Below are positions 115 to 49,836 of a DNA stretch of 64,000 nt, one piece after another. Location: the NCBI GenBank assembly GCA_964035545.1, contig OZ037767.1, forward strand, positions 26,304,628 through 26,368,627, given 5' to 3'. The notes under the pieces are model-generated. The model did not search any database and was not told where the DNA came from. It saw only the letters and a program-made list of their open reading frames with translations. The translations under genes and the position numbers were made by a program. The stretch comes from Bugula neritina. Its lineage: Eukaryota > Animalia > Bryozoa. The number at the start of each line of letters is the position of its first letter. Position 1 is the stretch's first letter.

Positions 115-798
115 AACATGTCTTCAAGCCCTCCACAAGAACGAGAAGACTTTGAGAAAGCTACCCGAGAAGGCCTCGCTTTCCTTCTGAAATATGAGGA
201 CCCCTTAACTGAGTTCTTCAACAGCCAATCAATGTACTTCATGCTGAAGGCTGATGGCACATGGGAGGAGACTACTGCTCCTTCACCTGCTACCAGGTAT
301 GTAAGAGTTGTTACTTTGTATACGTGTTGCCATGGGTACTCAACCTATAAGTAAATAATGCTTTATTAAAGTTTTACTTTACTAACAGTTATCTTGAAAA
401 AACATTACAAGTGCAAAAAAGTGGTGATGAGGTGTAATGCCCAATGTAGTAAGTGTACAACAATGGTTAGAAAATCTGAACATTATAAAATGTGATTTAG
501 TTACTTGATATATTAACAACATTTTAGAATTTATTGTCGCATTTTAATGTAAAATATAAAGTAGTACAAGTATATGATATCAAAATTCTTTTGTTGGCTT
601 TTAAAGTCTCCATGCCCATGAGAACTTTTGATAATGGGGTATTTAAGCAGACATGTTTCTATTATGGCGGAATGCTTTTTCTAACATCTAACCAATGGCC
701 TAGTTTTCTGAGATCCGAACCACTAGTTAGCATAATATACAATATCATACCTAATTTTGAATAATATTCATAGCGTTTTTTTCTGCAGGAAAAACTAG
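115..798 (+). CDS. NTAN1: 3' end (exons 9-10) of an NTAN1-like paralog ('copy 0'); the rest is upstream of the window or absent
   Basis: Exon 115-296 (ttgtag|AACATG...ACCAG|gtatgt) encodes [52 protein letters not shown], which matches the NTAN1 C-terminus (LSTSP.AEPP.F...LMFLKK...YKKNEDGLWE). Terminal exon 789-798 gives R-K-N-stop. Similarity to copy B starts only at ~56. Confidence 0.75.
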
Positions 799-1513
799 AT
801 GGGAAACGAATAAAATTTAGAAGGTGAACACTGGAGCACTTCTTTGAGCATTTCATCAACTTATAAAATTATGTTAAATGGATTGCATCCTATCATTCTT
901 TGCCTAGTATATTGCTTTTGCATTAAGCATATTACAACATTGTATTCTATGTTTTTTTTCTGATGAGTCTGAATGTAAAACTACTATACTTTTGCCATAA
1001 GTTGTTTACTATTTATCAAATATAATTTGACTTTGCAACATTTTATACAATATAAAGGTGAAAATGTATGTTCATCATTTTTATAATATAAATAAAAAAT
1101 ATATATTCATTTTATTATTATGGGAATTCAATATTAAGGAAAAGATTTCCATCTACCTAGCTTGTTGGTGAACATAAAAGGCTTATTGCAAATTATTTTT
1201 CTTAAACAGACTTTAATATATAAAAACAATTTCCTAGACACATTTAACATGCCAATCTATTTCATTATTACCTTCACGGTTATTGTAAAGTTTTTACTTA
1301 ATTTTTAATTTTAAAAGAGTTAACTCTGTAGCATTATACATAGTATCCCTCATGAGTCTGTAAGTGTGACACCTTCAAGTCAATAAGCAAAATAGTAGCT
1401 ATGAGTTTAAAATGGGTCAACGTTTAATCATAACTAAATTATAACAGGCAAACTAAGAGAAAGATAAATCCTAAACCTATGATTAAACCAGAACAAAAAG
1501 TCAATATTGTCAG

Positions 1514-47200: not shown

Positions 47201-49836
47201 GCCATTACTAATGCACCTCAGCAATTCAATATTAAAGCCATGGTGGTTGATGATGAGAACACTGATATTGTGTATGGAGTTCCCTATCCACTCTGGAGAG
47301 GAGCAGGTAACTCCTACAGAACATGTTTACTTGTCAGACTGCATGCAAAGTTGATGTGTGTATGTGTGTGTAAACCATATATCATCGCTTCAAATTGTAT
47401 TGCATTTTTGAAAAAGTCATGTTGACATGAATAAAAGTATTGCATTAACTATGTGTATAAATATTAGACTACTAATGTATACATGCTGTATAAGCTATCA
47501 CTTCTCATGTATTCATAACATCTGTATGTATACTCCAATACTGTAGCTATCAAGTTTGAGCAAGATATCTCCAACTTTTCTATTTTACGAGTCAAAGTTA
47601 CAGCAACTGGAAAAGGACCAATTCAACCATGTAAGATGGCTCGACTTTTCACTGACGTTGGAACGGTAAATGGAAACTTATGTTTCACTAGCTTTTCTTT
47701 TATAAGATGTCTTTTTAAATGAAAGCAATTGGACCGCAGTTAGTTGTACCATCTTTAAAGTTCTGGTAGCTTGAAGCATAAACTGTATGCTGTTTTTGAA
47801 TCTGCGGGTTTAAGGAAGTAAAAATAATTCATTGGCAAAAACCTTATAGACTTTGTTTGTGCATTCATAGGTTTAGTACAAATGGAGAAATATTCAATTT
47901 AGAGGCCTAAAGTTACGCCTTGAATGAATGTTATAGAATATAGATAGTAAAACTCATACCTGTTAATTTATTTTGATTTCTATTTTAAAGTAAGAGTTAT
48001 GTGTTTTTCCATTTAGATTCACAATGGTTATGATAATGAAAATCAGGTTATGATAATGCGTCCCTTTGGAGTTACAAACCCAGTGGATGAGACCCAGATA
48101 GTGCAATCAGACGAGTGGATACGAAATGTAAGATTTTGCACTCTTTATAGCATTGCCAATGATTATGTACTGAATATAAATGTTCAACTCCTCATGCTGT
48201 ATCTTTTAATACTTTTTTAATTGCTCGTCATTATACATGACTAGTAGGACTTTATATGTAAAAGTTGAAACACAAAGAGCAGTGTTGAAATATATTGTTT
48301 ACAAAATTTTAAAATATTCTTCCCTGAAAGTTAGCATATGATCAACTACATAGATTTCAAGTTCACATAACAATATTCAAGTTATTTAGTGTTTACATAA
48401 ACTAATAGCAAATAATATTGTGTACTTTATAAACTTGACTGTATCTACAATTTTCCCTTAGTTGAATACTTCAGATGATTTCGATGGAATTGTCTGCACT
48501 TGTAGCTAGTAATAATAAATGTAAGATTTAAAAAGTGCAGTGGGCGTACTTTTGCGCAACACTTTGCTGTATAAAAAAACTATCTGTAAGCAATTTAACA
48601 TGCTATTGTGTCTAAAAAATAATAGTCTTATCTGGTTAAAAAACAGGTCAGCAATGTCCGCTATGTTATAAATAACCTAAATGCAATGTCACTGTCTCTG
48701 TGAAATATTCAAATATTCTCCTCTGAAATTAATAGCTTTTTAGGGCAAATGTCAAACCATAAATTGGCCTTGTTATTTTTAGAGTTTTAGTTGATCAGGT
48801 TACTGTTATATGTGTTTTTTAAATTATGTGGGCTGTGAATTTTTACATCATAACAACTTGCAAGTAGCATTTGCTTGTGCAAGCTTGTGGTTTTGCTTAC
48901 AATATCACTTGCCACCATTTCACATAAAATATATATGAGCATATTATTGCATTCAGCCTTAGAAAGAAAGAGCAAGGTATACTTTTACTAATTATACATA
49001 TCCACCAATCTTTATGTGGCTATATTTTCATACTAATGTTCTTCATTTACAATGTCATTTTTATAGCTAATTTAAAACATATGTCACTAGATATTGTATT
49101 TCGCTTTGGTACTTTGATATTTTGATAGTAGTACATGGTATAAGTTTTAGAATAATAAGCATATGGTCACATCAAAAAGAAATATCCATTTCCTTATCTT
49201 AGCTGACTTGGGTGAATGCAAGATCATAAGCAATCTTGTAGAACATGTCTTCAAGCCCTCCACAGGAACGAGTTGGCTTTGAGAAAGCTACCCGAGAGGG
49301 CCTCGCTTTCCTTCTGAAGTATGAGGACCCCTTAACAGAGTTCTTCAACAACCAATCAATGTACTTCATGCTGAAGGCTGATGGCACATGGGAGCAAACT
49401 ACTGCCCCTTCAACTGCTTCCAGGTATGTAAGAGGTCAGAAGAGTGGTGACTTTGTATACGTGTTGCCATGGATACGAAGCCGGGTAGATAATGCTTTAT
49501 TAGAGCTTTTGTTTGTTTGTTAATTGTTCTATTTCTATTTTCTATTTCTAGTTCTATTTCTACATATAACAACATTTTAGAATGTATTGTAGTATCTTAA
49601 TGTGAAATATAAAGTAGTATATGTATGTAATATCAAAACTTTTTTGTTGGTTTTTAAACTCTCCATGCCTGCGAGAACTTTTGATAATGGGGTATTGTCT
49701 CTATTATGGCGGAATGCTTTTTCTAACATCTTACCAATGGCCTTTTCTGGGATTCGAACCACTATTAGTATAATGTTACAATATCGTACTTAACTTTGAA
49801 TTAATGAAAAATGCTTTTTTCTGCAGAAAAAACTAA
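44249..49836 (+). CDS. NTAN1: NTAN1-like protein, copy C (~327 aa, 10 coding exons; exon 4 is 21 nt shorter)
   Basis: Exons 44249-44344, 44608-44710, 45261-45326, 45607-45721, 46009-46082, 47199-47306, 47547-47665, 48017-48127, 49242-49423, 49827-49836. All GT-AG, frame open. Confidence 0.9.
46194..46892. repeat. Long imperfect (TA)n microsatellite in intron 5 of copy C
   Basis: Direct sequence; explains the YI-repeat ORFs. Confidence 0.97.

Follow-up and report, generated by a model that had tools for sequence, protein, structure and literature searches.

The DNA considered here is a window of 64,000 nucleotides (C3:26304628-26368627, C3 being contig OZ037767.1) from the 216-Mb assembly GCA_964035545.1 of the bryozoan Bugula neritina. 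Positions given without a prefix are positions in this window, which is about 32% G+C and contains genes with short exons. Two families of amidohydrolase genes are found in it: ASPG-like genes, which encode an asparaginase followed by ankyrin repeats, and NTAN1-like genes, which resemble the N-terminal asparagine amidohydrolase NTAN1. The window is the right end of an array that spans about 206 kb (about C3:26.148-26.354 Mb) and includes five ASPG-like genes, eight NTAN1-like genes, and three orphan last exons, with most of the genes intact. The window itself has a single ASPG-like gene and three intact NTAN1-like genes, along with one remnant exon and one orphan exon. In the 234 kb analyzed, exons were mapped by translated comparison with two genes outside the array, which share only coding sequence with it. 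Gene models were then built on splice sites, frame continuity, and conservation among the copies, and are known from genomic DNA alone.

Six-frame searches of the genome placed both families in this one region. For the NTAN1 family (PF14736, CNF1/YfiH-like Cys hydrolases), there are 13 exon matches genome-wide, with 11 at C3:26.167-26.354 Mb and two in a single canonical gene at C1:31.55 Mb. For the asparaginase family (PF00710), matches occur in one canonical gene at C3:16.49 Mb and at five loci at C3:26.155-26.317 Mb. This clustering is far beyond chance: all 11 of the non-canonical PF14736 matches and all five of the non-canonical PF00710 loci fall inside 206 kb of a 216-Mb genome. The original prediction, made from the window itself, held that one of the two enzymes had been amplified; this is true of the NTAN1-like genes, but the ASPG family has been amplified as well, to five copies. 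ATE1, NTAQ1, and asparagine synthetase (ASNS) have one locus each, and amplification is confined to the two asparagine amidases.

Four of the five ASPG-like genes are directly adjoined, head to head, by an NTAN1-like gene of type A; such a pair is called a cassette below. The NTAN1-like types are defined by intron-inclusive identity and consist of type A (N1, N3, N4, and NA), type B (N0 and NB), and type C (N2 and NC). Members of type A are 91-96% identical to each other, and identity between types is about 75-80% (introns included). Aligned with itself, the array is a mosaic of blocks with identities of 79-99%. Two genes record exchange between copies: the ASPG-like gene A5 switches from A3-like to A2-like sequence inside one intron, and N4, a type A gene, carries a type C-like exon 6. 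The array copies diverge by 1-25% (most by 4-25%), with indels and differing transposon insertions. The 234 kb around the window contains no Ns, and NA agrees with the unitigs of a public run at 99% identity or more. Unitig depth varies about 10-fold between unique and shared segments and was not used as evidence of copy number.

Gene structures and the divergent spacer

The ASPG-like gene of the window, A5 (7267-14434, minus strand), is intact, with 13 exons and 569 open codons, as judged from the gene model, Pfam matches, and motif alignments. Exons 1 through 7 are at 14434-14284, 14010-13854, 13304-13175, 12691-12574, 12372-12278, 12074-11948, and 11727-11587, and exons 8 through 13 are at 11025-10871, 10490-10377, 9776-9678, 8085-7961, 7728-7606, and 7441-7267. 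All of its introns are GT-AG, and the 3' end past exon 13 is uncertain. An intact ASPG-type asparaginase transcribed divergently from an NTAN1-like copy A across about 5.6 kb had been predicted, and the models bear this out: A5 (start at 14434) and the type A gene NA (start at 20017) are transcribed away from each other, with 5,582 bp between their starts.

The intergenic region between the two starts (14435-20016) includes about 4.5 kb that is common to the other cassettes and to the public B. neritina draft genome described below. The extra 1.7 kb is accounted for by a copy-specific insertion at about 17626-19360. An element of about 1 kb at 17620-18600 is an inverted duplicate of positions 30360-31411 and is probably a transposon fragment; it also resembles sequence beside the canonical NTAN1 gene (L017:7812-8099). 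A near-perfect palindrome lies inside the insertion at 18882-18968 (43-nt arms, 95% complementary, with 1 nt between them).

The predicted copy A and two further intact NTAN1-like copies correspond to NA, NB, and NC, each of which has nine exons and an open frame on the plus strand. NA (20017-24505; type A, 347 codons) has exons at 20017-20112, 20572-20674, 21335-21400, 21682-21817, 22181-22254, 22871-22978, 23248-23366, 23729-23839, and 24275-24505, with a GC donor after exon 4; its intron 5 contains a long (CA)n microsatellite (22323-22542). NB (32577-37158; type B, 350 codons) has GT-AG introns throughout, and its exon 9 matches PF14736 with 31.8 bits. NC (44249-49523; type C, 357 codons) has an exon 4 that is 21 nt shorter than that of types A and B, and its intron 5 includes an AT-rich, low-complexity stretch (46183-46861) of about 22% G+C. 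Across the family, last exons alone score 26.5-35.7 bits on PF14736 (cut-off 24), and none of the other exons is long enough to give a score by itself.

The donor of exon 4 is the consensus GTAAGT in most NTAN1-like copies and GCAAGT in NA and N3. At this junction, NA and N3 have either a GC-AG intron or an alternative in-frame donor/acceptor pair (21846/22159), which adds 17 codons. An alternative model, in which exon 4 was longer and the acceptor of exon 5 lay earlier, was ruled out by a stop codon in five copies.

Copy 0 of the original prediction, said to lie on the other side of the asparaginase gene from copy A, is indeed in that position, but what lies there is just the final exon of a degraded type B gene, N0. 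This exon 9 is at 115-351 (plus strand; PF14736 match at 61-267), and the remaining N0 exons, which are degraded, are upstream of the window. N0 has lost a donor site and part of exon 6, has an in-frame stop, and carries a retrotransposon in its intron 8. The orphan exon 9 of the window, with part of intron 8, is at 41607-41969 (plus strand) and has no upstream exons.

Duplicated blocks lie at both ends of these genes. The block at 1-4165 is 93-98% identical to 36800-40900, which takes in exon 9 of NB and the DNA downstream of it. The flanking block at 49700-61100 has a second copy about 149 kb upstream, at 89-94% identity, and holds exons of a glucose-methanol-choline (GMC) oxidoreductase, a third and unrelated gene in the duplicated region. 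These exons are on the minus strand at 58876-59166 and 59774-60088 (GMC_oxred_N, 64 bits; NAD-binding N-terminus). Long retrotransposon open reading frames within the array encode an integrase with a chromodomain (L005:7522-8754, minus strand), a reverse transcriptase (L015:1688-4147, minus strand), and a protease with an integrase (L016:6630-9020, plus strand), the last of them in intron 8 of N0. Such interspersed retrotransposons are possible substrates of unequal recombination.

Conserved residues and predicted activity

The catalytic Thr (TGGT), Thr-Asp (HGTDT), and Lys (RGNRTTK) motifs are present in all five ASPG-like copies of the array, each of which is open through at least exon 12. 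In A5, a single exon matches Asparaginase (PF00710, 47.8 bits), exon x8 matches Asparaginase_C (PF17763, 40 bits against a cut-off of 34.6), and exon x11 matches Ank, Ank_2, and Ank_4, which represent C-terminal ankyrin repeats. Single exons of A5 also align with bacterial type I asparaginase and mammalian ASPG structures (4R8K, 7R6B, 7R69), and the three motifs are kept in these alignments. Mammalian ASPG, or 60-kDa lysophospholipase (4R8K, 5DNC, 9S7Y), shares the order of type I N- and C-domains followed by ankyrin repeats, the motifs, and the lack of a signal peptide. In contrast to the mammalian gene, the array gene is a second, divergent paralog that is present in five copies, always in an array with NTAN1-like genes. 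Proteins of the ASPG family have been reported as lysophospholipases as well.

In human NTAN1, the catalytic triad is Cys75, His92, and Ser69, and the N-terminal asparagine is contacted by Thr73, Thr74, Ser254, Thr255, and Glu260 (PMC7022378). Exon 3 of the NTAN1-like genes aligns with human residues 61-87 and keeps Thr73, Thr74, and Cys75, and a His is positioned exactly 17 residues past the Cys, as it is in human NTAN1 and in the canonical copy. Position 69 is Thr in place of the human Ser; Thr is the residue used at this position of the triad by CheD and BLF1 (PMC7022378). Exon 9, compared with human residues 252-310, keeps Ser254 and Glu260 and has Ser for Thr255, so that the hydroxyl is kept. 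Right behind the catalytic His, types A and B have an acidic insertion of eight residues. Besides these residues and the PF14736 match, human NTAN1 (6A0E; PMC7022378) and the array proteins have N-termini alike in length and style. The differences from human NTAN1 include the number of genes (eight copies of three types rather than the usual single gene), the two substitutions (Ser69 to Thr and Thr255 to Ser), the acidic insertion of types A and B, a variable C-terminal tail, and a lower similarity than that of the canonical C1 copy.

No signal peptide is apparent at the N-terminus of either the ASPG-like or the NTAN1-like proteins, and both look cytosolic from their sequences. A secreted role, as in venom or digestion, was considered and is argued against by these N-termini. 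The array proteins are predicted to be active cytosolic amidases. How the two families are evolving was a question raised by the original prediction, and the answer is under purifying selection: pairwise Nei-Gojobori dN/dS is 0.06-0.28 for the ASPG-like genes and 0.17-0.48 for the NTAN1-like genes, with dS across both families of 0.02-0.35. Most array copies have therefore been kept as coding genes.

Paralogs elsewhere and related genomes

Separate canonical copies of both genes, which the original prediction proposed seeking, are present outside the array: NTAN1 on C1, and ASPG on C3 at a distance of 10 Mb. Their protein identity to the array genes is only about 45-50% (about 45% for NTAN1 and about 50% for ASPG). 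The outside NTAN1 is clearly the more conserved, as exon 9 of the C1 copy scores 33.4 bits against human NTAN1 and the array exon scores 21.6 bits. Because it also retains Ser69 and Thr255, the C1 gene is regarded as the canonical ortholog and the array genes as derived paralogs. In the case of ASPG, one exon was compared, with about equal scores for the array and outside copies. In trees, the canonical paralogs are on a very long branch, and the protein tree does not resolve the array copies.

Linkage in relatives, another point on which the original prediction depended, was found in the one close relative compared. Contig VXIV02001877.1 of the public B. neritina draft (GCA_010799875.2) carries the same head-to-head pair: an Asparaginase+Ank gene of 596 residues (minus strand; Ank_2 listed) and an N_Asn_amidohyd gene (plus strand). 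By the annotation, about 6 kb separates the two; between modelled start codons, the distance is 4.6 kb. DNA identity is about 86-88% to the nearest cassette and 82-88% to the array over genes, introns, and spacers, and the NTAN1-like copy is closest to type A. At this level of identity, the bugulid genome analyzed here would belong to a separate lineage of the B. neritina complex or to a sister species. The corresponding protein, KAF6028945.1 (188 aa), models only part of a nine-exon NTAN1-like gene, and some of it out of frame; the annotation is short because of a one-base frameshift in exon 9 of the contig. The DNA downstream of this cassette is a dispersed repeat.

Metagenome contigs from JGI, which appear from their sequences to derive from a Bugula-like host, hold further distinct NTAN1-like last exons, which are matched best by type A, by type C, and by the orphan exon, with identities of 82-85%. 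From these matches, the multi-type array is shared by the related lineage.

Among 1.8 billion representatives, and in a word search, no array-type sequence was found in other organisms, with thin coverage of bryozoans and weak exon-length queries. In a protein library searched with exon 9, the matches were limited to fragments of Bugula type, a single B. neritina protein (KAF6028945.1, the one close relative there that has a name), and the repetitive proteins P0002 and P0004-P0007, which are unrelated; word searches started from P0003 and from exon 9 brought up only Bugula and JGI entries. P0002 (4103 aa, from an ENA metagenome) has 29 stretches that match residues 27-57 of the NTAN1-like exon 9 at 37% identity and is probably an unrelated repeat protein. 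When metagenomes were scanned with exon 9 of the canonical gene, the one match (L025) was an unrelated eukaryotic NTAN1 exon that has no asparaginase gene within 6 kb of it. Literature searches turned up no account of the array, which is real, lineage-restricted, and apparently undescribed.

Origin and retention of the array

With moderate confidence, the locus is best explained as a bugulid array of a head-to-head ASPG/NTAN1 paralog cassette that has been multiplied and kept for more, or more diversified, asparagine deamidation. Old divergent paralogs of ASPG (an ankyrin-bearing type I asparaginase) and of NTAN1 lie head to head in a cassette that already existed when this lineage and that of the public B. 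neritina draft separated. In a retrotransposon-rich region, the cassette and NTAN1-like genes of two further types would have been multiplied by segmental duplication, unequal crossing-over, and gene conversion. The ASPG-like enzymes would convert free asparagine to aspartate and ammonia, and the NTAN1-like enzymes would do the same to the N-terminal asparagine of peptides and proteins. Extra copies would have been retained since more or diversified deamidating capacity was useful. The most economical reading is thus dosage or diversification of cytosolic asparagine deamidation, and its weakest step is the proposal that both enzymes serve one pathway. As in other tandem family expansions of invertebrates, the blocks form a mosaic of 79-99% identity, marked by gene conversion, by pseudogenes and orphan exons, and by retrotransposons scattered through it; in contrast to those expansions, the unit of this array combines two enzymes that are not homologous and yet share an amino-acid side chain as their target.

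Several observations weigh against the favored explanation. Co-duplication alone is no proof of shared function, because the GMC oxidoreductase and retrotransposons have been duplicated too. Two of the eight NTAN1-like copies are broken (N0, and N1 with a stop in exon 7), N4 stops just past the conserved domain, and the C-terminal tails beyond that domain differ in every copy. NA (at 21818) and N3 (at C3:26255793, window coordinate -48863) depend on the GC donor, and the NTAN1-like copy of the B. neritina draft (L021:8367-13190) is frameshifted by a 1-nt insertion in exon 9. The 4.5-5.6 kb between the genes of a pair is not a classic bidirectional promoter, and this spacer has no outstanding conserved block, with conservation at about background. 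Lastly, an ancient whole-genome duplication has been proposed for bryozoans (bioRxiv 10.64898/2026.09.16.752000), and the old ASPG and NTAN1 paralogs could be its leftovers. Such a duplication could explain old paralogs of both genes, but not why one of each are neighbors.

The main rival, less probable but serious, is that the two genes are chance neighbors in a duplication hot spot, in which one gene or neither is selected for dosage, the rest hitchhikes, and the shared chemistry is coincidental. A hot spot would account for duplication units that take in introns, spacers, retrotransposons, and the unrelated oxidoreductase, for signs of birth and death such as broken copies and orphan exons, and for a spacer that lacks special conservation. 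It fits poorly with the adjacency of two genes that are both old divergent paralogs of genes elsewhere, an adjacency that persists in a second lineage. Purifying selection on both families in most copies also argues against it, as does the retention of three NTAN1-like types, which extends beyond the type next to ASPG.

A more far-reaching possibility, and a rather doubtful one, is that the array is an animal metabolic gene cluster, in which two non-homologous asparagine amidohydrolases are co-regulated and co-amplified for a high flux from free asparagine and peptide N-termini to aspartate and ammonia. The original prediction had likewise proposed a co-regulated functional cluster, with peptide Asn/Gln scavenging, ammonia supply, or defense by deamidation as its possible functions. 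Metabolic gene clusters are common in fungi and plants and rare in animals. The array resembles them in the physical linkage of non-homologous enzymes of related chemistry and in the maintenance of that linkage in a relative. In contrast to such clusters, it has two enzyme types only, these would catalyze parallel rather than successive steps, and their co-regulation and shared pathway are putative. Bugulid bryozoans host bryostatin-producing symbionts, and if the array is a cluster of this kind, its possible uses include nitrogen handling in the bryozoan-symbiont holobiont or an asparagine-depleting nutritional immunity.

It is unlikely that the NTAN1-like enzymes have instead shifted to a new substrate in defense or regulation, either internal Asn/Gln side chains (cf. 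the deamidases CheD, CNF1, and BLF1) or small peptides, with a link to ASPG that is incidental or only regulatory. Such a shift would be consistent with the low identity to the canonical protein (about 45%), the substitutions at functional positions 69 and 255, the acidic insertion of types A and B, a dN/dS above that of the ASPG-like genes, and an unamplified ATE1. The retention of Glu260, which binds the free N-terminal amine, and of Thr73 and Thr74 fits ordinary specificity for N-terminal asparagine, however, and no positive selection was seen among the few sequences compared. Least probable by far is an assembly artefact of falsely duplicated haplotypes, as the original prediction had cautioned: some blocks are 96-99% identical and the unitig read set is probably from the assembled sample itself, but the copies (1-25% apart, and mostly 4-25%, with indels and different transposon insertions) are too divergent for haplotypes, the stretch is free of gaps, unitigs match individual copies at 99% or more, and the independent B. 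neritina and JGI contigs hold several distinct copies.

In the Arg/N-degron pathway, NTAN1 is generally viewed as a housekeeping enzyme encoded by a single gene. An array of eight NTAN1-like genes under purifying selection, tied to a five-fold amplified asparaginase in a genome in which ATE1 and NTAQ1 are single-locus genes, is therefore unexpected. If the cassette has been multiplied and kept for asparagine deamidation, as favored here, the array points to an unusual demand for asparagine breakdown. The three NTAN1-like types are natural variants for studies of NTAN1 specificity. If co-expression of the two families is shown, they would be a rare clustered, co-amplified metabolic module in an animal, and the array may be a pointer to unusual asparagine or nitrogen metabolism in bugulid bryozoans.

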